Below are positions 6,966 to 62,208 of a stretch of 64,000 nt of DNA, one piece after another; positions within the stretch are counted from its first letter, which is position 1; each line of letters begins with the position of its first letter. The translations under genes and the position numbers were made by a program. A model generated the notes under the pieces. That model was not told where the DNA came from. It saw only the letters and a list, made by a program, of their open reading frames with translations, and made no database searches. This stretch comes from Macrostomum lignano (Eukaryota): positions 186,001 through 250,000 of the forward strand of contig NIVC01000362.1 in the NCBI GenBank assembly GCA_002269645.1. Direction: 5' to 3'.

Positions 6966-9678
6966 GTATACAGAGCTTAGAACTTTCCCTGAATAGGAAG
7001 CATAAAAGAGGCAAAGCCAAAGAGTGGTAAGGCGAGACCATGGAGTAAAATATGAGTGGAATAAAGGATGAGGCAGCTAAGACAATAGAGTCCCACAAAC
7101 AAGTACAAGTGGAAGCCCACAGTGAATGCAACAGCGCACGACAAACCTACAGCAGCCACCTCAGTTTCAGATAGCCCGGAGAATATTATTCAAGTAAGAG
7201 CCCGACACGGAGGCAGCCCCTGGGGGGGGGGGAGCGGGCACACCCAAGACCGATGGCCACCCCCGAGGAGCGTAGCAACCGAGGGATGACCTGCCTGCAC
7301 AAGAAGACAGCAAAAGAACTCAGGACTGGTTTCCCCAAACACTCAACTCTACCAGAGTAAAACTGATGAGTCTAACCGCCTCACCCTTGCCCTTGTGGCA
7401 ACACGCGTGTTCAGTGGCGTCGCCATGGATTTTATGGTAGGGGGAGGGGGTAAAGCCAAGTATTACTCAACATGACGAAGTTCCTACACTATTTTGGGAA
7501 TCGGTGATGTTAGAACTCTTTTTGGCGCCGCAGGCGCTCATTTTCGCTTCACAGGCACGAGATTTTGGCGCCTAAAGCAAAATTATTGATTTCCATAACG
7601 GATCAGAAGGCGTGGTGGAGAGGACAAAAGCATTGACATGCCCACACAGCCCCCTACAGACCCGAACAGTCTAACGAACCTCTGCTATCGACTACTCACA
7701 AACTCGAATCCTTAATTTTTTATTTCATCCTCCCTTATCAAATGCTCGCTTGCTTTAATGTGACTTCCCCTCTGTTTTATCTCCTCTTAGAATTTCAGAG
7801 GTTAGAGTTTTATCCTCTTTTGGAAAGATGTAGGCATACACTCTTCTCAGCTCCGTCCCACATTGTCGATGACTCACCCTCTCGCCTAAACTTATTGTTT
7901 ATTTACCAAGTCTTGTCATCCCCACCCCCAATATGAACTAATAAATAAATATTGATTAAAGAGCAATACAGCGACCACCTTTTCTCGGCACGCAAACGTA
8001 GGCTTCACACTTACTCGTAGGTCGATCGAAAATTTCAGCACGTGCTCAACTCACCTCGACCTCTGCTTTTTTCGGTTTTCTTGACAGAGCGACCCTGCGT
8101 GCAAATGGTCCATTCTGGTAGCAGGTAAATAAGAGGTAAACTGCTAAATCATGCAGTCGAGTGCGGATGCTCACGTCCGAAAGACACACGCTCAACCTCA
8201 AACATCCGGGTTCGTGGATATCCGTCGATTGGTGAGAAAAGCTTGGTAATAAAAGCCACCCCACTTTTTAGATCCACACAAACTCACAAATTAATTGGCT
8301 TCTACGAGCTCGTAATATCGTCTCCCTGTTCATCATCCGAGATTATGTCAATTTCGGTAGCAAGCAATTCCGGCTAGCTGTCGCTTACGTTCGGGCTCCA
8401 TTCTGTTGTGTTTAATAATGAGCACAATGAGCTCGAAAAGGTATGGAAGTAAAATCGATTCTAGGGCGCCAAAAGACTACCCTTGCTTTATGTTTTTCCT
8501 GCACTGGACTAGCTCTGCAAAGGGGAATTGGACCTCTTGAAAGGAAACAGGTAAAAGAAGCGTAGTGCGCAGATGTTCGTTATACCCTACTGCTGTGACT
8601 AACAGTAAGCTGCAAAGAGTTTTATTCGCAGCGAACACAGGATTACCAGCAATGCGACGATTTGTTAAACGGCCTTTTAAAGGTCACCACACAAAATTCT
8701 CAAACACAACACATTCCGTTTCATTGGAAACACTCTGGCGAAACGTATTGTAAGTTTAACTGGATTTAAGTACGCTAAAAAACCCCAAATTACAGCCGAT
8801 TTTCCATATCCGATATTGTAGCAAATCGGGTAGCAATTCCTAAGAAAAAAGATGTCAAATATGGTCAAAAGCACTTTTATCTGCCATTGATCTCGTATAT
8901 AGTTGCTAGTACGAGCTAAAATACGCACTTTTAGAAATTCGAATTTATTAAATTTTGCTTAACAAATCGTGGTAATACGAGTATCGTAACGCTTAGTAGA
9001 AAAAAGCTTCGAAATAAAAAAATGGCATAAGATGCAAATAAGCTGCTTTCAGTAATATGAATTTGCATGCAAGGATACAGGGAATTACTATAGTGATAAG
9101 TAATCGTTCTGGCGTTTCTGAAATTAAAATGTTGGATTCATTGTGTAAAACAGAAAGGTACTACATGTGCAATACTAATAGAAATTCAAAGTTTTTCCTT
9201 AAAAAATCTGGAGAATTTCTCAGCAGGGGGTCCTTTGTGGCTGTGAATGAGGCGGACTTGCGGCTTCAATTACTAAGAGCAGTGTGAGATGAACATGTAC
9301 TAGCTATAGTTTAGATTGCTCAGGGCGAAGGGACGCGTAAGCAGGGTGTTGCAACCTTCCTGCTGCCATTCTGTGCCATGACCCGCTACTTCCCTCTACT
9401 GCCCGCACACACGAACCCGCAGCACGCACACACAGGCGGGCTTGGCTCGGGGGAGAGGCTATTAGCTTACCCAAACTTCCTTATGCTTTGCCACCCAGGG
9501 AGAAGGCTTAGCAAGCCATAAATGAAATGATTGTGAAAGTGCGAAAAATGAGGAGTTTAGTAATCGTTAATAATTAGGCCCTTAGACGAAATAATCAGGC
9601 AATTAGGCGGCTTCACTATTGAGTAAAATACAGCAAAGATACGGTAACACAAATTTATACAGGAACTTACCGGCAGCT

Positions 9679-9779
<101 letters not shown>

Positions 9780-10153
9780 TGGAGTGACCGCGGGCGGCTG
9801 TAGACTGCGGACAGGCAGATAGTGAAGCGGCGATGCGCTGAAGCGACGAGGCGCTGATGAAGCTCAGGTGATGCTGAGGATGCTGGGCGGTATTGGACCG
9901 CGGGCCGGCAAAGGTTCGTCTTATAGACGAGTAAGGGTCAAATCGGCGTCTGTCGGCAAGTCCAAAGATAGGACAAGAAATCCCGGAGGTCGAAGGTCAG
10001 GACGAAGCCAGGACAGGACAGGAAAGAAAAAGAACACCTGCTGATTCTCACGCCGAAAATCAAAGGCGAAACTCACTTCCTTAAATCCGCCTCATCCTTA
10101 AATCCTCCTCAAATCCGCCGCCCCAAGGTCGTTTCCATGACTCCCTCTCTCTG

Positions 10154-10188
10154 ATTGGCCGCTGGGAAGATGACGTCAGAATGAGTCA
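10154..10188. promoter_or_regulatory. Cluster of inverted CCAAT, CRE and AP-1 sites
   Basis: ATTGG 10154-10158, TGACGTCA 10171-10178, TGAGTCA 10182-10188, inside an unexplained 9.85-10.9 kb purine-rich segment. Confidence 0.25.
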
Positions 10189-11005
10189 TGATGAGAAATA
10201 TGAGAACGGCATAGCAACATGAGAAATGGGAGAATTGCGCAATCCGGAGGAGGGTTGATGGGAAAATGAGCACAGCGGGGGTCGAAGAAGTGTTGCGCAA
10301 GCGAACATTGAGAACAATGGGATCCAGATCGAGAACAAAAGAAATGGAAATCGGGGATAATTGGGGAGAATCGAGAACAATAGAAAAGCAAACATTGAGA
10401 AAAAGTTGCTAATTGGGTACGAAAAGGAGAACAAAAGAATCAGAAACGAAAACAATTATAGAGGCGGAGGAGGGGTGGGTATCACATGACAAATCCCGGG
10501 AAGAGAACAATAGCATGAGAAAGGTTGCGCAAGAGGAGGGTGATGAGTCATGGGGGGGAGGGAGGGGTCGGGAGTCTTGCGTCACCATTTGGAATCCTAA
10601 AGGGAGACGGGGTGATGATGAGCACAAACAATACTCTAAGTAGGCACGGGATGAGGAGGGACAGCGCAAGAAAAACGGGCGAAAACATGATAAAAAAGAT
10701 CAGAATGGAATGAGAAACATGAGCAATACATGACAAATGGTGTGGGGCGCATGAGAAATGGGGAGGCGGGCGAGGTGCGAAAAAGGGCACCAGAAAGGCA
10801 AGTGTGGCTGAGTGGGAGACGGAACAGAAACAGCAGAGGGCGCAACAGAGCGGAGTCAGTTGGCCTTGTCCGGGACCCGACCCAGTCTCTACAACTCTGC
10901 CCAGCGGGTCAAAGGGGATCTGGGATATTTTGAAAATTTCCCCACACGATCCCGCGACCAAAACGTGGTGAAAATACTTTTGAAATAGCTTTGACAATAC
11001 AAAAG

Positions 11006-12895
11006 TTAACTTATAACGCAACCAGAATCAGACTGAGGATTCAGGTTGGACGCCCGTCGTGACTGCCATGCAAACCTAGTATAATCGGTTCTATCCTCCA
11101 CTCGTGCATCGATAGCTTTTGTCAGCTCAGTCAACTTGGAGGAATCTTCCGGAGCCAACCGCTTGGACCGAAGCTTGTCTCTAATGAACTGATCCAAGTT
11201 GACGTCCTGGTGCAGGCCTTTCAAGCACCTGTGCGCTTTCACGAGTTCGTAGGCCGTTTTCTGCAAAGCCATCTTTGCGTCCATTCCAAGGTGATACTTG
11301 AGACGCCTCACAGCACCGCGCTGGTTCGGATTTTCTCCATACTTCTTGCTCACTTTGTCAATGGGAACAAATTCGTAGTGTTCAACCTCTCTCTGTTCGG
11401 TGCTGGTGTTCCGGTGAAGCCTCCAGTGGCAGTCGCACTCTTTACAGTATCCATCATTGTTCATGACACAACAACCTGCTTTATCTTCGTTGTTCGGTAC
11501 GCTACAATTTTCATGGCACGTACTTCGACACCTGATGCACCAAGTGATGCAGGACCGATCATCCCGACTTCTTTCTTCGATTCTGGTGCGCTTAATTCTA
11601 AAGTCGCTCTGTCCTGGGCACATTTGCTCTTGGAGCTGCTTGTTCGAGTCGTGTATGCTGAACAGGTCCTCTATTTCCTTTGCCAATCTTTCTGCTTTCA
11701 TCTCAAGTTCTTCAGCGCTTGTAGCGTCAATACCCTGTCGAAGCTTTGCACTTAAATCGCAGAGGTCGGTAGTTTGGCGACCAAACATGTTCAAAGAGGT
11801 GTCCATGCTGGTGTAGGTGAAGACGCTGTCTAAACTGCCGGCGTGATGAGCTTCAGCAAACTCATCCGAAGTGCGATGATTCACAAAACTTTGTTGCATC
11901 CGCTGCATGTACTCGCTCACATGAGTGTCCAGCTCTCTCTTGTAGCCATGCAGTGTCTCTCCGATTGAAATTTTTAACTCTGTCTCCCGACTAATCTTGT
12001 CCAAAAGGTCCTCGGACTGTTCAAGACCGGCCTTCAACGCTTGAAGGTACTGGCAGGCATCTTCCAGATGCTGCGTTTTTGTCATTGGGACTGAAGCTGG
12101 AACCGACGGGCAAAAGTAGCGCAATGGAGTGAGATGAATTTCCATTGCTTTATTCGCATCCCTCGAATCTAAAGATTTAAAATACTCTAAAACATCTGGT
12201 GGCTCTCTCATTGTCTTCCTTGGCTGCTTGAAGTCCGTGTGACACTCGATCTGATAGCTGCCAGAACTTGAAGAGCGTTTAGGCAAGTCAAATTTAGCGA
12301 ATGATCTGGCAGACTGCCCAGCATCTCTGATCCACTGTTCCACCTTCCAATCTACCAGTTCATGACAGTCAGATGTTGCTTGCTCAAAGAAGCTGGACGC
12401 ATTGGACCAGCCTTTGCAGACAATGAACGCCTTGCCTCCGTACCGGATTCCTGTCACAACGTGCGTTGCACCAGTGCTTAGCAACTTCTTCTCATTGTCT
12501 ACAGGCTCGTTGCAGCACTGAACCTCCTCAAACGCACTCTTCACGTCGTACTGCAAAGTGACGCTTCCACTGGTCTCGGTGGAGCTTGCCTCGGTGACGT
12601 ATTTTGCTGATCCTGTCATTGACTTCTCGCCGAGTTTCCACCAGGCCAATTTGAACTCAATGCAAAATCTCAGCTGGGCGTTCAGCCCCAGCTGTTCCGC
12701 TCGGCGCTTCGAGCTGTACTCGTAGTCCAGAGAAAACCTCACGCTGGGCGCATCATCCAGCCGAGTCGTCATTCGCCGAATTCGATCTGTGGGCCAGGCC
12801 GACTGTGCAATGATCCGGTGCTGTCGGATGTCATACAGCTGTCCGAGCTGAAAGGCCCGGCCCAGAGACGGGATGCACTCCGGTTGAGTCTGCAT
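11006..12895 (-). CDS. Stonustoxin/neoverrucotoxin-like MACPF/CDC-domain protein with C-terminal Cys-rich module and CaaX box (629 aa, intronless)
   Basis: N-terminus SLGRAFQLGQLYDIR matches the SNTX hallmark ALGRPFxLGMLYD; ATHVVTGIRYGGKAF matches ATHVVTxIxYGAxA. C-terminal CIRCRSTCHENC...DKAGCCVMNNDGYCKECDCHWRLHRN. Ends in CVIS-stop. Acceptor catttcAG at 12921, 26 nt upstream of the ATG. Confidence 0.85.
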   Translation of the reverse strand: MQTQPECIPSLGRAFQLGQLYDIRQHRIIAQSAWPTDRIRRMTTRLDDAPSVRFSLDYEYSSKRRAEQLGLNAQLRFCIEFKLAWWKLGEKSMTGSAKYVTEASSTETSGSVTLQYDVKSAFEEVQCCNEPVDNEKKLLSTGATHVVTGIRYGGKAFIVCKGWSNASSFFEQATSDCHELVDWKVEQWIRDAGQSARSFAKFDLPKRSSSSGSYQIECHTDFKQPRKTMREPPDVLEYFKSLDSRDANKAMEIHLTPLRYFCPSVPASVPMTKTQHLEDACQYLQALKAGLEQSEDLLDKISRETELKISIGETLHGYKRELDTHVSEYMQRMQQSFVNHRTSDEFAEAHHAGSLDSVFTYTSMDTSLNMFGRQTTDLCDLSAKLRQGIDATSAEELEMKAERLAKEIEDLFSIHDSNKQLQEQMCPGQSDFRIKRTRIEERSRDDRSCITWCIRCRSTCHENCSVPNNEDKAGCCVMNNDGYCKECDCHWRLHRNTSTEQREVEHYEFVPIDKVSKKYGENPNQRGAVRRLKYHLGMDAKMALQKTAYELVKAHRCLKGLHQDVNLDQFIRDKLRSKRLAPEDSSKLTELTKAIDARVEDRTDYTRFAWQSRRASNLNPQSDSGCVIS

Positions 12896-13907: not shown

Positions 13908-15362
13908 TCAGGAATCCGATGAGAGGTTCCGGAAGGTCACCTGCACTCCGGATGCGTCAGAATCAGGAACCTCGGATTGCTCAACAGCTACTAGAGGTTG
14001 CACCAATTTGAGCTTTTGATTCCCTGGCGTGGGGCAATATTCTACTAACTTTTTGTAAAATTTCTTCTCGAGCTGTTTGTTGTTCCAGAGTTTCAATTCA
14101 ACTTGGTGCTCGAACTTTTGCAGTTCAAACAATTTCATCGGGCAAGACAGGCAGTACATCTTTTGGTTTGGTTCTGTCATGCTCCTCATGATGAATTCGG
14201 CTCTCTGGGCCTGGCTTTTAATTATCTGGGCGCCAGCCTCTCGGAACTTATTGGAAATCACAACCAGAACGTCACCGGTATCGGCGACTGCGGTGGCCCA
14301 TTCCTGTAGGTGAGCGTACTTTTTTCCGGCATCGAAAAGGTCCGTTTTCAACCCGATTTTGCTCGCTTGATTGGCAGGCTCAGCCGTGTGATCTAGAACA
14401 GCTTCCCTCACAGCATCATCAAGGGAAGACTTGAATGATTCGAGCTCCCGAACTTCCGCTTCCAGCTTCTTCACCACGTGAGTCCACGCTGTCGGTCTCA
14501 GCTTGTAAATAATTTCCTCCAGAGTAGTCAGAGCTTCTTTCAGCACTTCGTAGCAGCGAACAGTTTTGCAGATGCACGTGGGCGGTAGTGGCAGGGGCGC
14601 TGGTGGAGTGTCTTCAACCAGCAGTGACAGAGGAAGCAGGTTGACCGTCAGTGGCGATCTAGCTTCAGCAGCTTGGATTGTTTGAATGCACTTCATGGCT
14701 TCAATGAAGTTGGTCGGTGGGCTGGCCAGGTGGAAGTCTCCCTTGTAGGCAACTCGGATCTTCTGCACGACTTTCGTTTCCTCCGACGTCATGTCAAGCG
14801 AGGCAGCTCCAGAGATGCTGACCAACGATGCAAACTTGCCAATCTGAGCTTTTAGACCGCCTCCGGTTTTGTCGCTCGTTGCGGAGTCTTCTTTGTCCCG
14901 CTCGAAAAAGAACAGAGCGGCTCCGCCATACTGAATTCCCATTACTACGTGAGTCGCATCTTTGTAGCTCGCTGAGCTCTTCAGCTTCCAATCTGGTGGG
15001 ACAACAAGTTCCCAATACTTTCCTTGAACTTGCAGTCGATATATGGCGCTCTCCGTCTCTTTCTTCTCTTTTAAGGTAGTCTGGTAGTTCCCGGAGCCGC
15101 TAGCGGACACCAGTCCCGATAGAATTGACAGCGACAGGTTTCCGGTCACTTTTGTGCTCAGGTTTTTGCTGTTCGCTGACGTTTCTGTTACAATATCGGT
15201 CTCCATGCTGATGTTCTTAGTTTCGGTCAGCATAGTCTGCATCTGCTCAGCGGTGAATAACTTGATTCCGGGGATAATTTGGCTGGTCCTGCTGTTGTAC
15301 AGCGCACCAAGGGTGAATGGATGGCCCACCGCAGGAATGGTGAGAGAGCTCGATGTTGTCAT
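13908..15362 (-). CDS. Stonustoxin subunit-like protein (MACPF/CDC + helical + probable thioredoxin-like domain, no PRY-SPRY; 484 aa from Met at 15362, intronless)
   Basis: LTIPAVGHPFTLGALYNSRTSQIIPG, LSILSGLVSASGSGNY, ATHVVMGIQYGGAALFFF, KVVQKIRVAYKGDFHLASPPTNFIEA are SNTX-family motifs. The acceptor aatttcAG at 15388 favours the Met at 15362 over the ORF-track start at 15449. Confidence 0.88.
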   Translation of the reverse strand: MTTSSSLTIPAVGHPFTLGALYNSRTSQIIPGIKLFTAEQMQTMLTETKNISMETDIVTETSANSKNLSTKVTGNLSLSILSGLVSASGSGNYQTTLKEKKETESAIYRLQVQGKYWELVVPPDWKLKSSASYKDATHVVMGIQYGGAALFFFERDKEDSATSDKTGGGLKAQIGKFASLVSISGAASLDMTSEETKVVQKIRVAYKGDFHLASPPTNFIEAMKCIQTIQAAEARSPLTVNLLPLSLLVEDTPPAPLPLPPTCICKTVRCYEVLKEALTTLEEIIYKLRPTAWTHVVKKLEAEVRELESFKSSLDDAVREAVLDHTAEPANQASKIGLKTDLFDAGKKYAHLQEWATAVADTGDVLVVISNKFREAGAQIIKSQAQRAEFIMRSMTEPNQKMYCLSCPMKLFELQKFEHQVELKLWNNKQLEKKFYKKLVEYCPTPGNQKLKLVQPLVAVEQSEVPDSDASGVQVTFRNLSSDS

Positions 15363-15921
15363 CTTTGTTTCCAAACCGATTTGTAAGCTGAAATTGTTTA
15401 AATATTGTTTTTGTCTTTGAAAAATACAACTTTGAGTTTTTCTAGCCATGAAAGTTACATCGTCGCGCAGCTGATGTGCAAAGTGAAGTGTGTGATATGT
15501 ACAAGTCGTGTGTTAACGCAGAATTGACGCTAAAATTCAACAGACAAAATTGTCTTCATTTGTTGGCAGGTTTAAATGAGTCTACAGTTGAGTTACAATC
15601 TATTGAGGTAGGATGTGTATATTTTGACTATAGTACTCGTAGTAGCTAACTTAGCGTTTAATTTCCCAACCAATCATAGAATTTCCTGTTCAAAATTGTT
15701 TAAATATCTAATTTTGTTTGAATTTTTGTATGTTTGAATCTTGCCTTTTTGTTTGAATGCGTCCCCCATTTTCCCCAAAATTTAGTATAAAAGGAGGCGA
15801 GTTGGCCAAAATAAAAATTGACCTGGTGTTACCTGATTAACTATCGAGAACTCTTAGTAAGCAAACTTGAAGTTTTTGGCTAAGACTTATCTCGCTATTT
15901 CTTTCATAAAAAGGAAAACCA

Positions 15922-24445: not shown

Positions 24446-27086
24446 ATGTTGTCATCAAGCAAAGCAGATGCAGAGACTTGGGATGCCAAATCTCTCTGCC
24501 TCTTGATGCTGGCTGTTGCAGTTCTTATCCCTGCAGCACCCCCATTTCTATTGCTATGGTTCATTATTCGCCTGGTGTCAATCTTTATGCCATTTAAATT
24601 GTACAATTACCTCGATGAGAAGTTGTACTCATCTTATCAATGGACTGTATTGTTTTTTTATGAGTATCTGGCTCAGACTAAGGTAACTACTATCCATTGT
24701 AGTTGGGCCTTATTGTTGCATTGAACTGTCAAATATCACTGTACTATAAAGTTTATTATTTTTTCCCACAGATAATTCTTTATGGCGACAGCATTGATGA
24801 TTTGTTCAAGAAGAAGGAGCGAGTACTGTACTTTTCTAATCATCAGTCTTCAGGTATGTTAATATTTGTTTATGATATAATGCTTTATGCATAGTATTCT
24901 TTGTGTTGTCTGTCTGCCTACCTAACACTGTCATTGATAGATAAGATTTTCTACATTAAAATGTTTGCACTTTGTTCTAAGAAAACTTTGAACTTCAACT
25001 CGAACTTAAAACAATTTAATCATTTTTTCTGAATTCCAAAAGGCAAAGTTTACTGTTCAAACTTGACTAATTTTGCTAGATTCAGCTTAAGTTCAGACAT
25101 TGAATAAAGTTCTCAATTATAATTCACTCATTGTTTCAGTCGACTGGATCATCACGGACATGCTGATTGCTCGCCAGGGTGGCATTGGGCGGTCGCGCTA
25201 TCTGCTTAAAAACGAATTAAAGTACATACCGTACTATGGCTACTATTTCTATCAGGTGAGAACACTATCTTCCAATTCTATCGTTTTCATACAAGCTAAA
25301 TGCATTGAACTTTTGTGAGTTGCTGTTAAGGCTACGAGCCTCCCAGATCCGCAGTTGCTAGACCAGCCTCAGATCCTCGGTTGCTGGGCCAGCCTCCCAG
25401 ATCCCCAGTTGCTAGGCCAGCCTCCCAGATCCCCAGTTGCTAGGCCAGCTTCCCAGATCCTCCGTTCCTGGGCCAGCCTCCCAGATCCCCAGTTGCTAGG
25501 CCAGCCTCCCAGATCCCCAGTTGCTAGGCCAGCCTCCCAGATGCCCAGTTGCTAGGCCAGCCTCCCAGATCCCCAGTTGCTGGGCCAGCCTCTCAGATCC
25601 CCAGTTGCTAGGCCAGCCTCATTCCCCATACAGCCCGCTGCCCCCATTCCAATTCGCAGCACGGGTGCATATTCGTCAATCGCAGCGAATTCAAAGCCGA
25701 TCAAGCTGTCCGCTCGCTGATATCGCTCGAAGCCAACAACACCAATTCCTGGGTGATCATCTTTCCGGAGGGCACCCGGATTAACTATGATAAACCGGCG
25801 GTGATTAAAAAGTCTCAGGAATTTGCCACCAGCCACGGGCTGCAGCCGCTGCGCTACCACCTGACTCCGCGTGTTAAAGGCACCTACCTGACTCTCAACA
25901 CTCTGGCTAACTATTTTGACGCAGTGTATGACATCACCATCGCTTATGAGGGCTTCACCGGTGGTAAAAATGTGCCACAGCTGTTCTCCTGGTTTAAACG
26001 GCGTCGCACGCTGCATATTCATCTGCGTAGACTGCCTATGGATCTGGTGCCCAGGCGAAATCAGGAGGAGGTGGCCAGCTGGCTGCATGGAGTCTTCGCT
26101 GAGAAAGACAGGTTGGTTTCATTTCATTCCCTGTGTCTCATCTCCCCGATCCCTGTGTCTCATCTCCCCATTCCCTGTGTCTCATCTCCCCATTCCCTGT
26201 GTCTCATCTCCCCATTCCCTGTGTCTCATCTCCCCGATCCCTGTGTCTCATCTCCCCGATCCCTGTGTCTCATCTCCCCATTCCTTGTGTCTCATCTCCC
26301 CATTCCCTGGTCTCTCATCTCCCCATTCCCTGTGTCTCATCTCCCCGATCCCTGTGTCTCATCTCCCCATTCCCTGGTCTCTCATCTCCCCATTCCCTGT
26401 GTCTCATCTCCCCATTCCCTGGTCTCTCATCTCCCCATTCCCTGGTCTCTCATTTCCCCATTCCCTGTGTCTCATCTCCCCATTCCCTGTGTCTCATCTC
26501 CCCATTCCCTGTGTCTCATCTCCCCATTCCCTGGTCTCTCATCTCCCCATTCCCTGGTCTCTCATCTCCCCATTCCCTGTGTCTCATCTCCCCATTCCCT
26601 GTGTCCCATCTCCCCATTCCCTGTGTCTCATCTCCCCATTCCCTGGTCTCTCATCTCCCCATTCCCTGTGTCTCATCTCCCCATTCCCTGGTCTCTCATC
26701 TCCCCATTCCCTGTATCTCTCATCTCCCCATTCCCTGGTCTCTCATCTCCCCATTCCCTGTGTCTCATCTCCCCATTCCCTGGTCTCTCATCTCCCCATT
26801 CCCTGTATCTCTCATCTCCCCATTCTGTCTCATCCCCTAGTCAGTCCAGACTAACAGTCAGCCCCGCTCCCTGTGCAGAATGATGTCCGAATTCAACGAA
26901 ACCGGCCGCTTTGCCGGTCCGTCCAAAGTGTCGCGATTGCCGCTGAGCCGCCTTCTACCCGCCACGGCGTTCATTTTGGCTCTGATTGGCAATTTTTGGC
27001 TGGCCGATTTCGGCTTAAGAATGTACCTAGGCACCATGCTGCTGGGCGGGATAGTGTCCATTGTCTACGCTATGTTTGTTATCTAA
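24446..27086 (+). CDS. AGPAT5: 1-acyl-sn-glycerol-3-phosphate acyltransferase epsilon (LPAAT5), 5 exons, 364 aa
   Basis: Exons 24446-24682, 24772-24853, 25140-25255, 25660-26111, 26879-27086; all GT-AG, phases compatible, 1095 nt in total. Motifs NHQSSVD (HX4D), RYLLKNELKYIPYYG, IIFPEGTR, LTPRVKGT, FDAVYDITIAY, WLHGVFAEKDR match AGPAT5. Confidence 0.95.
25338..25620. repeat. 28-bp minisatellite in AGPAT5 intron 3
   Basis: Unit gccagcctcccagatccccagttgctag, about 10 copies. Confidence 0.95.
26125..26830. repeat. 22-23-bp pyrimidine-rich minisatellite filling AGPAT5 intron 4
   Basis: Unit ccctgtgtctcatctccccatt, about 31 copies. Confidence 0.97.
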
Positions 27087-27589
27087 CTGATTCGGGAATG
27101 GACTTAGGCAGGATGAGAGTAGAATTTAATGCGATTTAGGAAAGTTAGATTAAAGAGAATTTATAGGGAAACTAGAGGTCTTGTTGAAATGATGCACACA
27201 CATCAACATCAATAAGTTACACTCTGTATGTCTATCTTTTTTTCGCGAATAATCCATGTCTACGAACAAAACGTATTACAATACAATATTGATTGCTTGA
27301 TCTACCTTATCTAGTTTCTTATTTATAGTTTAACAAAGTGTAATTGATTTTAGTACCAAAGTATAGCCTCTAAACTAATAAATTAAAAATATCATTTTGT
27401 AATTTAAAACCCTCGAATTTCTCCCTCAGCTTCTTTCTTCATTGTTTTTTAGTAGTTTTGTTTCAAGTTAGATTTTTCCTCAGAAACAAAAATTATTGGT
27501 TTTTCAATCAGTATCTATTTTCCTTAATAAAACGCGTTGCTGTTTTGTCTACGACTTCATCTAGGAACTGCTATGTCGAATTTAGATTG

Positions 27590-27732
27590 TTGACCAGTAG
27601 GCTGATACACATGTTGGCTACTATAAGTAGACTGATTCAGATATTGCTTACTATAAGTAGGCTTATTCAGGTATTTTCTACTATGAGTAGGCTGATTAAG
27701 GTATCGTCTACTATAAGTAGGCTGATTCAGAT
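27590..27732. repeat. About 33-bp degenerate tandem repeat, roughly 4 copies
   Basis: ctactataagtaggctgattcag-type units. Confidence 0.75.
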
Positions 27733-29590
27733 AAGCAAAATGTGAAATTCCAAATAGTTCCGTCTACTTCCAAGTCTTAGTTGTGTTTTTTTGTGTCGCC
27801 CAGATTTTTGCCCTCCTTACTAAGCTATCCGTTATAACCGAAAGTTAAATTTCGTTCGGCACACATCGAACTTCTCTAGTGGTATTTTTTAATTTGTTTG
27901 TTTTCTGGTTAGTTGTCTTTTTTCAATTTGATTTAACGAGCGCTCGTCAAGTTCCCTCACTCAGTGGTCGTCAAAAATAAAAAACACTACTGCTTTCTCT
28001 AAAGCTGTTTAATCTGCTTGGTTTCCTCCACTTTTGGGGAATCATGTGTTTTTATACTGTTTTGTTTTTTGATATTTTTATAGTTTTCACCAATTGCTTC
28101 CGCTTTTAACTATAAAAATGTCGTTTATGGCCGCGAATCCGTACTACTTGTAGTAGAAAGCAGGTGACTCGCGGGTTTTTCCTTTAATTAACCTCACTTT
28201 AATTTTACAATAATTAAAATTAAAATATATATTTTTCAATTATTTTAAGTCTCACAGGAAGTGCAAACAATAGCAATTAAGTCGTGACTTTAAAGTATTT
28301 AATTTCTATCTTAGAAATAAATAAGCCCTGATTTGTTTCATATTCTGTGTTTGACTATATCTCGAATATTTTGTTTCGTCCTACCTTGCTTTTAGTTGAA
28401 TTCTATTATTATTAGTCATAATATCAAGCATCTAAGTTTGACTTCTAAGAATTGTAAATTTTATTTGTTTTTCATATCAGCTTCAACTTGTTTATTTGCG
28501 CTACTTTCTACTTGCCATCAGTAGAGTAGCTTGAATTTATAGTTTTAAATTTACTTGACTTTGTTTGTAATTTTCTGGTTTATTCATAACAAATTTGTAT
28601 AAAATATGCTGTATTATATAATTATACCATTTGCTAAATTTTCTTGCTGTTTAGTCATTTTTGTAAGGTCTACTTTTTTCAATTAAAAAATAATCGCTTT
28701 TTTTAGCGTGTGCTACTATATATAAAGAATTACTTTGCAGTCAGCTAAGCCTATATCAAACAATATATCAGATAATTGAGTAGCTATCCTCCTAAATTTC
28801 TCATTAATGTGCTGCTGGCTTGCAATCAATTGGTTTAAAAACTATTAGCAGTGGGGAAATACAAAAAGTATCAATAATTAATAAATTTTTACTTTGATTT
28901 AATTGATAGAATTATTTACTGTCTTTTTCCAAAGCTGGAATATTTGATTTTATAATTGGATTCTTTCATTTTGTTAATTTTTAGATGCAAACAACAACAA
29001 AGCAACGAGAAGTCATATTAAATTACTGACACCAATCACGATACCATAAAACATAAGCTCAAACGCACACTGTACCAATTTTATTTTAAATATAATAAAT
29101 CAGTTTGGCATGAAAATGACTAACAAAATAATTCTTGTTTTTAAATTCAAATAAATTATCTGTTTGGTAAAATTATGTCAACATTTTGACAAACGCAAAA
29201 ATATGGCAAATTAGTTATTTTTGCAGCTGCATTTTTAATGCTGTTTGTGAGAGGCCAGGCCAATAGAGTCAATAATTTACGAAACAGGTCGAGGAAGGCA
29301 GAAAGTCATGGAATTGAAAGCAGAAATGATGATATATAAATGTATAGTTATCACATCAAACCTTGCAAAACAGAATTAATTAAATAATTAACTGAAATCA
29401 AAATTAATTGCAAATAATGCAAATAAACAGACAGACAGACAAACCTACTGCAAGTAAGTAGAGTGTAAAGTGTATGCTTCCTTTTTTCTGTTTTACAACA
29501 ACAAAATAATAATTAAAGAAACAGATACGGCAGGTAAATCCGATAAATTAATTAATAATAAACTAAACTAAATAAACTAAAATATAAAAT

Positions 29591-32558
29591 TCAGACATCG
29601 AATATGCCTCTCCTGATGGCCACACTGGTTGTGTCAGGTCCGTTTCTAAGCGCGTCGGCAGCCGCCACCAGAGATTTCGTGTCGCCTACGCTGGCCGCTC
29701 TGTGCATCTGTAGGCGCTGCTGGCCAGATGCGCCGCTATAAACATTGCTATTAGGAGTTGGGAAGTGCGCAAATGTAGGCGGAAACGTGGGTAGCGGTAC
29801 CGTCATGTAGTACGAGGTTGATCCCGTCTGAAAAGATTAATTAAATAATCATTTATTCTAAACAAGAGTAATTATGAACCTAACATCGCTATTAAGTCAC
29901 TCCAAATCGAAATTAAAATTCACTCTACACTCTAAACCCTCGATAATGAGTCACTCTAAACCATCGATAATGAGTCACTCTAAACCATCGATAATGAGTC
30001 ACTCTAAACCATCGATAATGAGTCACTCTAAACCCTCGATAATGAGTCACTCTAAACCCTCGATAATGAGTCACTTTAAACCATCGATAATGAGTCACTC
30101 TAAACCCTCGATAATGAGTCACTCCAAACCCTCGATAATGAGTCACTCTAAACCCTCGATAATGAGTCACTTTAAACCCAGATAATGAGTCACTCTAAAC
30201 TCTCGATAATGAGTCACTTTAAACCCAGATAATGAGTCACTCTAAACTCTCGATAATGAGTCACTCTAAACCATCGATAATGAGTCACTCTAAACCATCG
30301 ATAATGAGTCACTCTAAACCATCGATAATGAGTCACTCTAAACCCTCGATAATGAGTCACTCTAAACCACCGATAATGAGTCACTCTAAACCCTCGATAA
30401 TGAGTCACTCTAAACCCTCGATAATGAGTCACTCTAAACCCTCGATAATGAGTCACTCTAAACCATCGATAATGAGTCACTCTAAACTCTCGATAATGAG
30501 TCACTCTAAACCCTCGATAATGAGTCACTCTAAACCATCGATAATGAGTCACTTTAAACCCAGATAATGAGTCACTCTAAACCCTCGATAATGAGTCACT
30601 CTAAACCCTCGATAATGAGTCACTCTAAACCATCGATAATGAGTCACTCTAAACCATCGATAATGAGTCACTCTAAACTCTCGATAATGAGTCACTCTAA
30701 ACCCTCGATAATGAGTCACTCTAAACCATCGATAATGAGTCACTCTAAACCATCGATAATGAGTCACTCTAAACCATCGATAATGAGTCACTCTAAACCA
30801 TCGATAATGAGTCACTCTAAACCATCGATAATGAGTCACTATAAACCATCGATAATGAGTCACTATAAACCATCGATAATGAGTCACTCTAAACCATCGA
30901 TAATGAGTCACTCTAAACCCTCGATAATGAGTCACTCTAAACCACCGATAATGAGTCACTCTAAACCCTCGATAATGAGTCACTCTAAACCCTCGATAAT
31001 GAGTCACTCTAAACCCTCGATAATGAGTCACTCTAAACTATCGATAATGAGTCACTCTAAACCCTCGATAATGAGTCACTCTAAACCCTCGATAATGGGT
31101 CACTCTAAACCATCGATAATGAGTCACTCTAAACCATCGATAATGAGTCACTCTAAACCCTCGATAATAAGTCACTCTAAACCATCGATAATGAGTCACT
31201 CTAAACCCAGATAATGAGTCACTCTAAACCATCGATAATGAGTCACTTTAAACCCAGATAATGAGTCACTTTAAACCCAGATAATGAGTCACTTTAAACC
31301 CAGATAATGAGTCACTTTAAACCCAGATAATGAATCACTTTAAACCCAGATAATGAGTCACTTTAAACCCAGATAATGAGTCACTTTAAACCCAGATAAT
31401 GAGTCACTCTAAACCCTCGATAATGAGTCACTTTAAACCCAGATAATGAGTCACTCTAGACCCTTGATAATCACTAAACCCTCGATAATAAAGCCTAATA
31501 AACGGTATCCATAAGCCTTACCTGAGCCTGACTGGCAGGTAATTCATCATCCAGCAGAGTGCCTCCGGCTGCAGCATCCTCATCTGTTAAATAAGCATCC
31601 GGCCTTGCTCGCAGCATTCTCACAGCAATTTCGCATTCGGTTTTGCATCGTTCCCGATCGATTTTGAGCCGTTCGACAGTCTGCTCAGCCTCGGCCAGTT
31701 TAGTCTCTGAGCTGGCTAATTTATCTAGCAGAGTTCGCTGCTCGGCATCGAACTTGCCGGCTAAGTCTAACAGTTTCTCTTCTAGGCCGGCGTTTACTCG
31801 GCTAAGCCGTTTGTGCGACTCCAATAGGCGGTCGTAGCGATCGCGCAGTCTGGCCAGATCCTCGGTCTGGCGCTCCGAGTCGGAGCGGCGCGAGTCTCGC
31901 TCGCTGGCCAAGTCAGACTCTAGACGGCTAAGGCACTGGCGTTGATCGCGTAGTCGGCGTTGCAGCTCTTCGATTTGATGGTGATAGTCCAGGCTGGGGT
32001 TGGGGGAGGGCGGTTCAAGCTTGAATTATATAATTAAATCATAATTTACCAACTGATAAGAGACTGGCGGCTGGCGAAATTAGATAAGGAATTGACAATT
32101 GCAAGACAAAAAATGGGTAGCGGACTACGATTAAAGTGAAATAGCGGCTTTATAAAAGATCAAAGGAACCTAAATTCGGTATTTAATACGATTCAAACTG
32201 AATGGCGGCATCATGAAAGATCAAAAGAACTGAACGGCGGCATCATGAAAGATCAAAGGAACTGAATGGCGGCATCATGAAATATCAAAAGAACTGAATG
32301 GCGGCATCATGAAAAATCAAAAGAACTGAACGGCGGCATCATGAAAGATCAAAGGAACTGAATGGCGGCATCATGAAATATCAAAAGAACTGAATGGCGG
32401 CATCATGAAAAATCAAAAGAACTGAATGGCGGCATCATGAAAGATCAAAAATAAAAATAATAATTTGTGAATAAAACTCACTTATGACTACTGGAACAAT
32501 TGTGACACACACAGCCGCATTCGTAGCACTTTCCGGTAGATGTTCTGCCAGCAGACAT
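29591..32558 (-). CDS. TJAP1 (PILT)/BEGAIN-family coiled-coil protein, about 261-268 aa
   Basis: Exons 32558-32482 (MSAGRTSTGKCYECGCVCHNC), optional 21-nt 32070-32050, 31993-31522, 29827-29591; phases compatible. EDLARLRDRYDRLLESHKRLSRVNAGLEEKL...RERCKTECEIAVRML aligns by eye with TJAP1 EELDKFKDKFRRLQNSYTASQRTNQELEDKL...NERYRLDCNLAVQLL. Confidence 0.75.
29925..31490. repeat. 24-bp minisatellite in the last intron of the TJAP1-like gene
   Basis: Unit gataatgagtcactctaaaccatc, about 65 copies. Confidence 0.98.
32196..32450. repeat. 31-bp minisatellite in intron 1 of the TJAP1-like gene
   Basis: Unit aaagaactgaatggcggcatcatgaaagatc, about 8 copies. Confidence 0.95.
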
Positions 32559-33594
32559 TGCTTTAGCAATTGCTTAGCGGAGGTTCAGTTGTCTGAAGTG
32601 ACGAAATATGCATTAATAATTTTAATACAAGACAAACGGTGTGCAGTTTAAGTGTAATACAGCTTTGAAGACAAAAAAACATTAAGAAACACTGCCAAGT
32701 ATGTTTGCCATAAGGATAAAGTTTTAAAGTTATGAAATATATTTAATTTTTTTCAAACTCTAGGGAAAAGTTTATTTACAAGGTGGACAAAAGGACTTAA
32801 ATGGCGCCTAATACAGCAAGCGCTAAAGGAGGCTATTCTAATAAAAATTAAATTATCTACGTGAATTAATATTGATTATATTATTGCACTGATCTGCAAG
32901 ATTTATCAGTAGATTTTGCTGCTATAAAAATTTAAAAAATGTTTGTGTAAAAATGGGTTTCGGCAGTCACTTTCCGGATGCGCAAAACGAGCGAGGAAAA
33001 GGCCTAGCGCTAATTGTTTATTGTTTTGTTGCATTCAAAAAGTGAAACTAATTTATAAAGTAGATTTTAAAAGATAAATTCCGATAAAATATGTACAAGC
33101 ATTAGTAAAAATATTAATTATTCAGGATTATATGATTATATAAATATTGTAGCAGCCTGGCGTGCAGGATTAGAAATCTATCAATTATTAATATATACAT
33201 GATAAGTTTAGAAAAATAGTGCAGGTCACATGGAGACAATTAGGCTATATACTCGTATAGGCAAAATATTAATAAATATTTCAATACATAGTGAATTTAT
33301 TCAATATTTAATCTTTAATTTTTAGTCTTTTGTGCAAGACTCGCGCCTTGCACAAAAGCTAAGGAACAGGACAAAAAGCCTTAACAAGCTAAATAAAGCT
33401 ACTATGAAGGATAGGATTAAAAATATTAACTTCTCCGTAATAGAAAACATCTGAGAATAATATAGCATGAGCAGAAGCAACTAATAAATATATTGGTGCC
33501 AAAACCAGAAACAAGAATTGAGAATAGCCCATAAATCTGTTGAACATTGCGCAAACAAAAATGAACTAGATCAACGGAATCGGGTCTGTCAGTT

Positions 33595-34912
33595 CTAGTG
33601 TCTGCCAGTGTCTGTCTGCCAGTGTCTGTCTGTCTGTCAATGTCTGTTTGCCAGTGTCTGTCTGTCTGTCAATGTCTGTTTGCCATTGTCTGTCTGCCAG
33701 TGTCTGTCTGTCTGTCAATGTCTGTCTGCTAGTGTCTGTCTGCCAGTGTCTGTCTGTCTGTCTGTCTGCCAGTGTCTGTCTGTCAATGTCTGTCTGCTAG
33801 TGTCTGTCTGCCAGTGTCTGTCTGTCAATGTCTGTCTGCTAGTGTCTGTCTGCCAGTGTCTGTCTGTCTGTCTGTCTGTCTGCCAGTGTCTGTCTGTCAA
33901 TGTCTGTCTGCTAGTGTCTGTCTGCCAGTGTCTGTCTGTCAATGTCTGTCTGCCAGTGTCTGTCTGCCAGTGTCTGTCTGCCAGTGTCTGTCTGCCAGTG
34001 TCTGTCTGCCAGTGTCTGTCTGTCAGTGTCTGTCTGCCAGTGTCTGTCTGCCAGTGTCTGTCTGCCAGTGTCTGTCTGTCAATGTCTGTCTGCCAGTGTC
34101 TGTCTGCCAGTGTCTGTCTGTCAATGTCTGTCTGTCAGTGTCTGTCTGTCAGTGTCTGTCTGCCAGTGTCTGTCTGTCAATGTCTGTCTGCCAGTGTCTG
34201 TCTGCCAGTGTCTGTTTGTCAATGTCTGTCTGCCAGTGTCTGTCTGTCAATGTCTGTCTGCTAGTGTCTGTCTGCCAGTGTCTGTCTGTCAATGTCTGTC
34301 TGCTAGTGTCTGTCTGCCAGTGTCTGTCTGTCAATGTCTGTCTGCCAGTGTCTGTCTGCCAGTGTCTGTCTGTCAATGTCTGTCTGCCAGTGTCTGTCTG
34401 CCAGTGTCTGTCTGTCAATGTCTGTCTGCCAGTGTCTGTCTGTCAATGTCTGTTTGCCAGTGTCTGTCTGTCTGCCATTGTCTGTCTGCCAGTGTCTGTT
34501 TGTCAATGTCTGTCTGCCAGTGTCTGTCTGTCAATGTCTGTCTGCCAGTGTCTGTCTGTCAATGTCTGTCTGCTAGTGTCTGTCTGCCAGTGTCTGTCTG
34601 CCAGTGTCTGTCTGTCAATGTCTGTTTGCCAGTGTCTGTCTGTCTGCCATTGTCTGTCTGCCAGTGTCTGTTTGTCAATGTCTGTCTGCTAGTGTCTGTC
34701 TGCCAGTGTCTGTCTGCCAGTGTCTGTCTGTCAATGTCTGTTTGCCAGTGTCTGTCTGTCTGCCATTGTCTGTCTGCCAGTGTCTGTTTGTCAATGTCTG
34801 TCTGCCAGTGTCTGTCTGTCAATGTCTGTCTGCCAGTGTCTGTCTGTCAATGTCTGTCTGCCAGTGTCTGTCTGCCAGTGTCTGTCTGTCAATGTCTGTC
34901 TGCCAGTGTCTG
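33595..34912. repeat. CTGT-based compound micro/minisatellite (14-bp tgccagtgtctgtc and variants)
   Basis: Directly visible; lies between SHOC2 and the TJAP1-like gene. Confidence 0.97.
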
Positions 34913-35504
34913 TCCTATCGACTTGTCCAATATGTAACAAAGTGTAATGGTTTATTATAACCAGCTTCTAAAGAATTGATGCAATTGATTAAAAAACAGT
35001 GTTTAAAGTTTAGCATACAGGTATAAGCATAGCTTAATTAATAAACTGCATGCATAAAGTTCTGAGCAATTTCTTACGCTATGATTATAATCTTAATTTC
35101 ACGACACAAGTCAAATACGACAGAGTCATCTTAAAGCGATTGCACATTTAAAATAAAAATTTTATAGTGTAAATCGGCAAAAAATTGTCAAACAAAAGCC
35201 TGCAATAAACTACTAAATATAAGTAATGTAGTTAGTGTATGACCGGTAAACAAAAATTAAATAGTTTAACAAATTTTCAAGGCCGGTGCCAATTTCTTGG
35301 TTACGGTAGATTTTCCGATTTTTTAAATAGTCATTTTTGCAAAAAATCGCTAAGTTTCTTTACTTGCTACTGATAGTAAGCAAGATGAAGTAGAGTATTA
35401 TTTTTTAGAATCTACAAAAACGGAATAAATGTTATGAATTGAAACAAAGCATAAATATTGTCGTAGAAGCTGTTCTCAAAAGACAGCTTAGCTCAAATAG
35501 ATTG

Positions 35505-41786
<6,282 letters not shown>

Positions 41787-41877
41787 TGCTGAGCTACTAA
41801 GACGCAAACCCTTGTGTTCGGCTGGTTTGATATAGAAACTGAAATATGAAGGAGTGTGTGGATAAGGGGAGGGTTAG

Positions 41878-42350
41878 ACGGGACTAGGGAAGCATTCTAG
41901 GAAACGGGACTAGGAAAGCATTCTAGGAAACGGGACTAGGGAAGCATTCTAGGAAACGGGACTAGGAAAGCATTCTTAAAAACGAGACTAGGGAAGAATT
42001 ATTGGAAACGGGACTAGGGAAGCATTCTTAGAAACGGAACTAGGGAAGAATTATTGGAAACGGGACTAGGGAAGCATTCTTAGAAACGGGACTAGGGAAG
42101 AATTCTTGGAAACGGGACTAGGGAAGCATTCTTAGAAACAGGACTAGGGAAGAATTCTTGGAAACGGGACTAGGAAAGAATTCTTAGAAATGGGACTAGG
42201 AAAGAATCATTGGAAACGGGACTAGGGAAGCATTCTTAGAAATGGGACTAGGGAAGCATTCTTAGAAATAGGACTAGGGAAGCATTCTTGGAAACGGGGC
42301 TAGAAAAGAATTCTTGGAAACGGGAGTAGGGAGGGATTCTAAATGGGACT
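41878..42350. repeat. 26-bp minisatellite
   Basis: Unit ctagggaagcattcttagaaacggga. Confidence 0.95.
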
Positions 42351-42409
42351 AGGGAAGGATCGCAAAGGAAGCAAGGAATGACTCGAGGGGTGCTAAGATG
42401 GATTCGAAT

Positions 42410-43110
42410 GAGGTATTGGGGTAGATTCATAAAGTATTGGGGTAGATTCATAGGGTATTGGTGTGGATTCATAGGGTATTGGGGTAGATTCATAGGGTAT
42501 TGGTGTGGATTCATAGGGTATTGGGGTAGATTTATAGGGTATTGGTGTGGATTCATAGGGTATTGGGGTAGATTCATAGGGTATTGGGGTAGATTCATAA
42601 AGTATTGGGGTAGATTTATAGGGTATTGGTGTGGATTCATAGGGTATTGGGGTAGATTTATAGGGTATTGGTGTGGATTCATAGGGTATTGGTGTGGATT
42701 CATAGGGTATTGGTGTAGATTCATAGGGTATTGGGGTAGATTCATAGGGTATTGGGGTAGATTCATAGGGTATTGGTGTGGATTCATAGGGTATTGGTGT
42801 GGATTCATAGGGTATTGGTGTAGATTCATAGGGTATTGGGGTAGATTCATAGGGTATTGGTGTGGATTCATAGGGTAGATTTATAGGGTATTGGTGTGGA
42901 TTCATAGGGTATTGGGGTAGGTGTGGATTCATAGGGTATTGGGGTAGATTCATAAGGTATTGAGGTAGATTCATAGGAAAGAATTCCTATTCCTAATTCA
43001 TAGGGTAGATTCATAGGGTATTGGTGTGGATTCATGGGGTATTGGGGTAGACTCCTACTAGGGTATTGGGGTATATTCATAGGGTATTGGTGTGGATTCA
43101 TATGGTATTG
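42410..43110. repeat. 21-bp minisatellite
   Basis: Unit gattcatagggtattggggta / gattcatagggtattggtgtg. Confidence 0.96.
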
Positions 43111-43409
43111 GGTTAATTTAATGGTTTATTCAATTAAAAGTGAAACGCAAGGTTAAAGATCAGTGGCAGTGTGAGAAAGCAGTCAATATAGTTTATTTGT
43201 AATTCTGTTAAGCTACAATATTACTTTATACTATTTTGTGCCTAGTAAAAACAGTTGCTGGAATATTAGCTATCAGCCATTAACTCAGCAGAGCGCCGTA
43301 CTGAGTAAAAAGTATATAAAATTGTACTTTATTGAGGTTGTCAATCGTTTATATAATCACTATAGATCGGAAATTGTGTATATATATTCAATCTACGCTA
43401 ATATATCTT

Positions 43410-61916: not shown

Positions 61917-62208
61917 ATTACACCTGCCCCAATTGGGCCAGATGTACAACCGACAGCTCAGCCGCAGCTATTGCGCGGCGCATCTGAAGGCTGCGTACGG
62001 CTGTTCAGTCCAAGGACTGGGGGGGGGGGGGGGGGTGTCACCACACACACCCTCAATTACCCCAGCTAATGCTGGCACCCATTTTACATCTGGGTGAACT
62101 GAAGCAATTCAGAGAGTTAACTGTCTTGCTCAAGGACACAAATCGTTCCGAGTGGGATCGGGAATCGAACCCCCGACCTTCAAGTCGTGAGTCCGACGCT
62201 CTAACCAC
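61917..62208 (-). mobile_element. tRNA-derived CORE/MIR-like SINE, copy 2
   Basis: Minus strand reads GTGGTTAGAGCG (A box)...GGTTCGATTCC (B box), then the CORE-like block and an (ATT)n tail; carries an internal G-run expansion at about 62018-62035. Confidence 0.82.

Follow-up and report, generated by a model that had tools for sequence, protein, structure and literature searches.

A short stonustoxin-like gene of the flatworm Macrostomum lignano with a Cys/His module and a predicted farnesylation signal

The 64,000-nucleotide stretch of DNA from the free-living flatworm Macrostomum lignano that was analyzed here (contig NIVC01000362.1, positions 186,001 to 250,000 of the forward strand, assembly GCA_002269645.1; referred to as the window in the following) carries on its minus strand a single-exon gene for a 629-residue protein. 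In this protein, a MACPF/CDC-like pore-forming domain of the stonustoxin (SNTX) type is followed by a helical region, by a module with eight cysteine and two histidine residues (Cys8His2), and by a terminal CaaX box with the sequence CVIS. We think that the gene encodes a farnesylated, cytosolic and “switchless” MACPF pore-former that was derived by internal loss, a reading that we hold tentatively as a whole and to which we give a nearly even chance of being correct. The sequence suggests a pore-former that is tethered to the cytosolic face of a membrane and, as judged from comparison with its copies, the short gene is real and maintained by selection. A preliminary description of this locus, made from the DNA alone, covered the interval 11006-11700, which spans residues 399-629 (231 residues) and so takes in no more than the last third of the coding sequence.

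The short gene and its protein product

The open reading frame (ORF) starts with ATG and its product ends in ...SDSGCVIS, followed by TAA. The frame is unbroken across the homologous stretch, which extends from residue 8 to about residue 597. The length of 629 residues, the terminal CVIS before the stop codon and the lack of a Walker A motif, all stated in the preliminary description, were confirmed by reading of the sequence and by a motif scan. The top protein match is PAA47042.1, a “hypothetical protein BOX15_Mlig004669g4” with 91% identity, and a word-indexed homologue search with the 629-residue protein returned the 91% identical paralogue alone. Together with two more annotated M. lignano copies, g1 and g2, four copies are known in all, and intact ORFs of identical architecture are found at several independent loci or contigs; in the databases, the M. 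lignano paralogues carry only the label “hypothetical protein”.

A syntenic duplicate of the locus is present on contig NIVC01004600.1 (locus L001). There the short gene is 93.5% identical and annotated as a single exon, and the neighboring gene in the tandem, which also encodes an SNTX-like protein, is 91.5% identical, whereas the intergenic DNA is only about 70% identical or cannot be aligned. The ratio of non-synonymous to synonymous substitution rates (dN/dS, calculated according to Nei-Gojobori) between the window copy and the L001 copy has a value of 0.345 over the whole gene and stays within 0.31-0.36 in the individual regions, which indicates that the short gene is under moderate purifying selection. 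BOX15_Mlig gene models were built from genome-guided RNA-seq assemblies (PMC5730564), and the gene model of the L001 paralogue consists of one exon that ends at the stop codon after CTIS. This model indirectly disfavors splicing past the CaaX stop, which the preliminary description had named as a possible objection. A continuation of translation past the CVIS stop was considered as well and was rejected: a tblastn extension crosses the stop codon, but without conserved residues.

The N-terminal 265 residues contain an LGRxFxLGxLYD motif and ATHVVTGIRYGG. With phmmer against PDB sequences, residues 8-349 match stonustoxin beta (4wvm_B, E=3e-13) and residues 8-161 stonustoxin alpha (4wvm_A, E=8e-8). 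The AlphaFold2 model of the 629-residue protein was computed from a 58-sequence alignment and has a mean predicted local distance difference test score (pLDDT) of 78.8, with residues 1-345 mostly above 90. A Foldseek search with this model again gave 4wvm_B as top match (E=9e-13, 405 aligned columns) and then 4wvm_A, followed at lower ranks by TgPLP1, a Bacteroides MACPF protein, pneumolysin/perfringolysin, MPEG1, perforin and C8. The MACPF/CDC fold, which is characterized by a bent central β-sheet flanked by two helical clusters, is supported by the confident model and by these structural matches, and the SNTX-like identity given in the preliminary description is borne out by both kinds of search. 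The first of the two clusters that would form the pore hairpins contains a clear alternating hydrophobic stretch, NAQLRFCIEFKL.

The alignment with the stonustoxin beta chain reaches residue 349, which faces chain residue 338, and the model places two long helices (274-301 and 305-342) in this region, which corresponds to the start of the helical, FAT-like domain of stonustoxin. Pfam did not detect Stonustoxin_helical in the 629-residue protein, nor the thioredoxin-like (PF18078) and PRYSPRY domains at E<=1. Where venom stonustoxin has its thioredoxin-like and PRYSPRY domains, the window protein has the Cys module instead. By hydropathy, neither a signal peptide nor a transmembrane segment is present in the protein; the maximal 19-residue Kyte-Doolittle value reaches 0.77, and the protein does not begin with a hydrophobic stretch.

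The Cys module follows the pattern C-x2-C-x3-CH-x2-C-x10-C-x8-C-x2-C-x(1-3)-C-x4-H, with an additional invariant lysine and an invariant glycine. The positions that are invariant in the family correspond to C453, C456, C460, H461, C464, K472, C475, G482, C484, C487, C489 and H494, and all 10 invariant cysteine and histidine residues are kept in the window protein (alignments A2 and A3). The cysteine pattern that the preliminary description had read from the sequence occurs exactly once, at residues 453-496 (11408..11539), and the helical flanks it had noted reappear in the AlphaFold2 model, in which a beta-rich core (431-511, pLDDT >90) is enclosed by helices at 394-424 and 512-600. The module is thus modelled as a beta-rich knob between long helices, and the part behind it is predicted to form helices 528-560, 567-576 and 582-599.

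Homology in the module region has E values from 1e-12 to 1e-24. No Pfam family covers the module, also when all 28 members of the module alignment are scanned, and Foldseek with the C-terminal model gave a best PDB match of E=0.46 and nothing below E=0.05 in PDB or BFVD. Matches of the module profile to coiled-coil-type PDB sequences (the haemagglutinin HA2 stalk, Rad50 and dynein, E~3e-3) were judged to be compositional, and matches to mitofusin HR2, Fzo and EAD9 (E 0.05-0.1) were taken as coiled-coil noise. The match to the influenza HA2 stalk stems from the helix-plus-CxxCxxTC part of the A2 profile, that is, from coiled-coil composition together with a short Cys motif. We presume that the Cys8His2 module is a zinc-binding domain outside the catalogued families.

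The SNTX-GTPase-Cys family and the loss of an internal block

When 1.84 billion representatives were searched exhaustively with HMMER, 604 proteins matched at E<=1e-3. The strong family matches are mostly 1150-1300 residues long; the query residues 8-160 align at their N-terminus and residues 430-560 at about residues 970-1160, as for instance in the match to P0002 (E=1.4e-24), in which residues 367-546 of the window protein face residues 978-1159. The canonical order of Pfam domains in these proteins is MACPF_SNTX, Stonustoxin_helical, Thioredoxin_11, fn3 and a GTPase of the AIG1/Septin/MMR_HSR1 type, followed by an unannotated C-terminal region. Examples are XP_028328301 from Gouania willdenowi and, from M. 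lignano itself, the GTPase-bearing paralogues PAA60539.1 (P0003, 1163 residues) and PAA80612.1 (P0009, 1211 residues). The Walker A motif of canonical members is situated a constant 290-305 residues ahead of the Cys block, and a P-loop is found 200-360 residues upstream of the module in 75 of the 86 module proteins that possess enough upstream sequence to be judged. As the P-loop occurs in so many of these proteins and at near-constant spacing, the association of the Cys block with a preceding AIG1/septin-like GTPase, which the preliminary description had put forward, is correct.

The family spans teleosts, bichir, gar, sea turtles, a sea urchin, Mytilus and Macrostomum, and it includes many eukaryotic contigs from metagenomes. 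A word-indexed search with the module alignment gave just seven proteins with an uninformative taxonomy, and a census search with the full-length alignment A3 was discarded as uninformative, being dominated by fn3-repeat proteins (sidekick-2). In the literature searched there is no description of a MACPF-AIG1/GTPase fusion, of a prenylated MACPF protein, or of SNTX-like genes in Macrostomum, and the cross-phylum SNTX-GTPase-Cys family is apparently undescribed. It joins a stonustoxin-type pore domain, a GIMAP/septin-like GTPase and an uncatalogued Cys/His domain across fish, turtle, sea urchin, mussel and flatworm, and we consider this family and its Cys/His domain to be a by-product of more interest than the flatworm gene.

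Compared with these relatives, the window protein is shortened. The motifs GxxxxGK[ST], [GA]xxxxGK[ST] and GK[ST] do not occur anywhere in its 629 residues, no P-loop or GTPase family of Pfam is detected in it even at E<=1, and Thioredoxin_11 and fn3 are absent from the protein (Pfam) as well as from the whole 64 kb window (tblastn). A split gene with a GTPase exon nearby was considered and rejected, as tblastn with canonical members finds only two SNTX-like genes in the 64 kb. The window protein is similar to P0003 in two blocks only (residues 8-333 vs 5-314, and 450-597 vs 959-1093), between which about 645 residues of P0003 face 116 residues of the window protein; the missing block therefore takes in the thioredoxin-like region, fn3 and the GTPase. 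The missing segment amounts to about 530 residues, and about 40 linker residues stand where those domains are located in the relatives.

A neighbor-joining tree built from the module region pairs the window protein with its paralogue P0001 and places both as sister to the canonical M. lignano protein P0009, and the other GTPase-less proteins in this tree (turtle P0049, P0007, urchin P0035 and cichlid P0045) each have a GTPase-bearing protein as nearest neighbor. Given the canonical paralogues in the same species, the sister grouping with P0009 and the GTPase-bearing neighbors of the other short forms, the parsimonious reading is that the short form descends from an ancestor of the SNTX-thioredoxin-like-fn3-GTPase-Cys type through internal loss of about 530 residues. 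The preliminary description had proposed a deletion of the GTPase; the loss itself agrees with this comparison, but it extends beyond the GTPase and includes the thioredoxin-like and fn3 domains. Comparable losses seem to have happened several times, with the reservation that exon skipping in the gene prediction may account for some of the others. Such an artefact does not account for the Macrostomum short form, because its ORF is continuous in genomic DNA.

A large missing internal segment, a sequence that is highly divergent from all relatives and a repeat-rich, redundant genome could also be taken as signs of a decaying, truncated relic without function, or of an artefact of the assembly or the gene model. 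We regard this as very improbable and as largely excluded by the intact ORFs of the same architecture at several independent loci or contigs, by a dN/dS of about 0.35 with all 10 invariant ligand residues kept, by coding DNA that is far better conserved than its flanks, and by the continuity of the ORF in raw genomic DNA, in which no splicing by a gene model is involved.

The CaaX box and the possible mode of action

The four M. lignano copies all end in a CaaX box, which is CVIS in the window copy and CTIS in g1, g2 and g4, so that the conservation among paralogues asked for in the preliminary description is found. The box has been kept next to a strongly changing tail: directly upstream of it, 46 codons that the paralogues possess are deleted in frame from the window copy, which leaves both the frame and the box intact, and the corresponding insert of the paralogues (L001 about 11864..12040) is rich in Gly, Ala, Ser and Pro (LPERPTTPPTFGAVGADSTGSG...). 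No other part of the protein evolves as fast as the tail, and the synonymous substitution rate (dS) of the tail, 0.71, is several-fold higher than elsewhere in the gene. The last 29 residues (601-629) have pLDDT values below 50 and are predicted to be disordered, and the CaaX box should therefore be accessible. A cytosolic protein with a flexible, accessible C-terminus, as is typical of CaaX substrates, is thus predicted.

CaaX boxes with S, M, Q, A or C at position X direct farnesylation, and farnesyltransferase is near-universal in eukaryotes, for which reason the enzyme is assumed to be present in M. lignano. Human GBP1 is farnesylated on CTIS (PMC2903825), which agrees with the farnesyl CaaX of GBPs cited in the preliminary description, and the boxes CVLS of H-Ras and CIIS of yeast Ras2 are farnesylated as well (PMC10541624). 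CVIS is predicted to obey the same rule as CTIS, CVLS and CIIS.

The box is also not restricted to the short gene. Among 149 family representatives, a cysteine is found at position -4 in 11, compared with about 2 at the adjacent positions and 0-4 at every other position from -1 to -15 (p=2e-5), and a strict CaaX box was observed in 7 of them against 0.37 expected. Canonical GTPase-bearing members carry such boxes (P0013 with CVIQ and P0022 with CVIM), and they occur on a protein with GTPase and module (CLIF) and on SNTX-only proteins (CNIL). From this enrichment and from the boxes on other members, the CaaX appears as a recurrent, non-random feature of the family and not as a flatworm peculiarity. 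The CaaX-like termini were noted in P0013, P0022, P0029, P0135, P0066, P0089 and P0126 and comprise CVIQ, CVIM, CIIV, CLIF, CNIL (twice) and CSIG; CSIG is the end of M. lignano PAA54514.1, and CNIL that of Mytilus edulis CAG2256745.1. We take CNIL to be the geranylgeranylation box of human GBP2.

In the mechanism that we propose, the protein would be translated in the cytosol and would receive a farnesyl group on Cys626, by which it would bind weakly and reversibly to the cytosolic face of membranes. The Cys/His module would bind zinc and, located at the tip of the helical stalk, might serve in assembly or recognition, while the MACPF domain would oligomerize and perforate the membrane from the cytosol, be it that of a pathogen-containing vacuole, of an organelle, or the cell's own membrane. 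A heteromer might be formed with the tandem neighbor, as in stonustoxin alpha/beta, or with the canonical GTPase-bearing paralogues. With the loss of the GTPase there would be no nucleotide switch, and the protein would be a constitutive or partner-dependent subunit.

Several observations weigh against this proposal. The Pfam family MACPF_SNTX (PF24674) matches residues 7-170 with 22.6 bits (E=6.9e-5), which is under the 27-bit gathering cut-off, and the N-terminal domain is therefore regarded as a divergent member of that family; in the second pore-hairpin cluster the alternation is weaker, with a clear pattern in the first hairpin only. At the level of the gene, a look-up on public contigs did not find the exact window protein sequence in the public gene collection, and neither AATAAA nor ATTAAA occurs within 700 nt downstream of the stop codon. 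The sister grouping with P0009 that enters the argument for an internal loss is placed on long branches, the window module is very divergent from all relatives (distance about 0.8), and zinc binding is deduced solely from the ligand pattern. Also the novelty is reduced, because the combination of an SNTX N-terminus and the module in the absence of a GTPase is already known from predictions: proteins from turtle, sea urchin and cichlid are catalogued (Chelonia mydas XP_043394780, named “stonustoxin subunit alpha”, Diadema setosum XP_072163209 and Pundamilia A0A3B4FRS8), so that the architecture, which the preliminary description did not recognize as described, is not unique in this respect. Finally, the CaaX box is lacking in most family members, and the tail of the window protein (...SRRASNLNPQSDSGCVIS) possesses neither a polybasic cluster nor a second cysteine that could serve as second membrane signal. 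A lone farnesyl would for this reason bind membranes only weakly, as has been noted for human GBP1 (PMC2903825).

The scarcity of the box in the family and the missing second signal are equally points in favor of a different view, in which the CaaX box is unused and the protein is a soluble SNTX-like cytolysin that is stored in gland or epidermal cells and freed by rupture or unconventional secretion, with a Cys module that only stabilizes or oligomerizes. The closest characterized relative is indeed a venom cytolysin, and fish stonustoxins likewise have no signal peptide. Nevertheless, we consider an unused box to be unlikely, as it is retained in 4/4 copies across a fast-evolving, indel-bearing tail, as CaaX is about 5-20-fold enriched family-wide, and as the GTPase of the canonical relatives belongs to a type of machinery that operates inside cells.

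A further possibility concerns the partners of the protein. It might be a regulatory or decoy subunit that forms no pores alone and that co-assembles with the canonical paralogues or with the tandem neighbor, via the MACPF interface or the shared Cys/helical module, thereby either recruiting them to prenyl-marked membranes or inhibiting them. The canonical M. lignano paralogues share the same module, stonustoxin works as a heterodimer of paralogous chains (4wvm A and B), the tandem pair is kept in the duplicate locus, and GTPase-less forms seemingly arose repeatedly alongside GTPase-bearing relatives. However, purifying selection acts on the MACPF domain just as it does on the other regions of the protein, the domain has kept its conserved YGG/ATHVV core, and the neighboring ORF is interrupted in L001, which speaks against an obligate pair. 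A subunit of this kind is in our view unlikely.

Returning to the farnesylated pore-former, MACPF/CDC pore-formers are normally secreted or lumenal, and in the literature searched no MACPF protein is reported that perforates from the cytosolic side via a farnesyl anchor. If true, a lipid-anchored cytosolic pore-former would be a new deployment of perforin-like domains that could be likened to gasdermins or GBP coats. A wider proposal would extend this to the family: the SNTX-GTPase-Cys proteins would be an unrecognized class of cytosolic, sometimes prenyl-anchored perforin-like executioners in cell-autonomous immunity or cell death, Cys8His2 would be a new zinc fold that controls assembly, and the Macrostomum form would be a farnesylated “switchless” pore-former that acts from the cytosolic side. 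This wider proposal is possible, and we think of it as somewhat doubtful. As M. lignano is tractable by transgenesis, the short single-exon gene is convenient for testing, in the absence of the GTPase, what each of its parts (pore domain, Cys module and CaaX box) does.

Neighboring features and comparison with known systems

The features of the short gene and its tandem neighbor are compiled in Table 1. The neighbor's true start is probably at an internal methionine near residue 30. Its product is similar to the 629-residue protein (BLASTP E=6e-9), its SNTX-like sequence is better conserved than that of the short gene, and it has neither the Cys module nor a CaaX box. The tandem arrangement is kept in L001, with the neighbor at L001 7449..8965, but the ORF is interrupted there (336 residues, 7455..8465, vs 513 residues in the window), and an obligate two-gene pair is therefore doubtful. 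By analogy to the two-chain heterodimer of stonustoxin, it is possible that the neighbor is a partner subunit.

Table 1. Position of the short SNTX-like gene, the parts of its product and the tandem neighbor in the window
Feature	Residues	Coordinates	Strand	Evidence
Complete single-exon coding sequence, TAA at 11006-11008	629 aa	11006..12895	minus	ORF listing, unbroken homology, 93.5% identical copy
MACPF/CDC-like pore-forming domain, stonustoxin type	1-265	12101..12895	minus	phmmer, Foldseek, pLDDT mostly >90
Long helical region, start of stonustoxin helical (FAT-like) domain	266-350	11846..12100	minus	SNTX-beta alignment, model
Low-confidence linker	351-391	11723..11845	minus	pLDDT <50 at residues 350-391
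Long helix before Cys module, homologue of post-GTPase helix of canonical members	392-430	11606..11722	minus	P0002 alignment; model helix 394-424
Beta-rich Cys8His2 module	431-511	11363..11605	minus	Alignment columns, pLDDT 90-97
Helical region after Cys module, homologue of family C-terminal helices	512-600	11096..11362	minus	tblastn/blastp vs P0003, P0009, P0026
Disordered fast-evolving tail	601-625	11021..11095	minus	pLDDT <50; P0001 alignment
CaaX box CVIS, predicted farnesylation signal	626-629	11009..11020	minus	Read from sequence
Second SNTX-like MACPF gene	513 aa (ORF)	13908..15449	minus	phmmer E~2e-32 to 4wvm_A and 4wvm_B

CT-rich low-complexity DNA (10100..10900) is located immediately 3' of the stop codon of the short gene, and a (GA)n-type microsatellite at 9700..9800 (plus strand) translates as a run of RERERE.... 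Much of the right half of the window (25300..63600) is taken up by dense minisatellite arrays, whose periods are 14-45 bp and whose copy numbers reach 136 (for example at 29928-31471, 36165-38752, 53078-54690 and 59171-61353). They yield long spurious ORFs in multiple frames, including one at 59087..60976 (plus strand) that coincidentally also has 629 residues, and they give rise to low-complexity Pfam matches (GLTT, HC2 and VD10_N). A genuine leucine-rich repeat (LRR) region is contained in the ORF 40208..41320 (minus strand; LRR_8, E=6e-28, residues 181-339), the N-terminal part of which spans (GACA)n/(TAGA)n microsatellites at 40825-41291; this ORF probably belongs to an LRR gene as one of its exons. 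Two other fragments are probably exons of multi-exon genes, namely a dystroglycan-like one at 45475..46440 (minus strand; PF05454, E=4.5e-13, residues 189-244) and one of the Acyltransf_C type at 25753..26883 (plus strand; PF16076, E=1.7e-9, residues 85-125). A scan of the window for bacterial-type promoters and terminators gave counts at the level of shuffled sequence and is irrelevant for a eukaryote.

Among known systems, stonustoxin and neoverrucotoxin of scorpaeniform fish (4wvm) have in common with the window protein the MACPF/CDC-like domain, the first part of the helical domain that follows it, the lack of a signal peptide, and the organization as tandem paralogous genes. Unlike them, the window protein does not contain the thioredoxin-like and PRYSPRY domains and instead possesses the Cys8His2 module and the CaaX box, and it stems from a flatworm, with no indication of a role in venom. 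With the SNTX-GTPase-Cys family it shares homology at both protein ends and all invariant residues of the module, and some family members also possess a CaaX box. It differs in its high divergence and in that about 530 residues with the thioredoxin-like, fn3 and GTPase domains are absent, so that the central feature of the family, the G domain, is missing.

The catalogued proteins from Chelonia, Diadema and Pundamilia resemble the window protein in possessing both an SNTX N-terminus and the Cys module while lacking a P-loop. In contrast to it, all of them keep the thioredoxin-like domain, those from Chelonia and Diadema also keep fn3, and none ends in a CaaX box; as their nearest relatives bear a GTPase, each of them appears to stem either from a separate loss or from a gene model in which exons were skipped. 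The minimal architecture of MACPF, helical region, module and CaaX was found in Macrostomum only, among 150 representatives examined.

The two remaining comparisons concern membrane anchoring. Human GBP1 also has a C-terminal CaaX box, and the CTIS of the paralogues is identical to that of human GBP1, which invites the idea of a lipid-anchored cytosolic defense protein directed against membranes. The two are not homologous, as GBP1 is a dynamin-like GTPase and not a MACPF protein, whereas the window protein is without a GTPase and its tail is without a polybasic patch, and the likeness is an analogy only. Perforin-2/MPEG1 is a MACPF pore-former with a C-terminal membrane anchor, as is predicted for the window protein. 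MPEG1, however, takes the secretory pathway and is held by a transmembrane anchor on the lumenal side, whereas the anchor of the Macrostomum protein would be a prenyl group on the cytosolic side.

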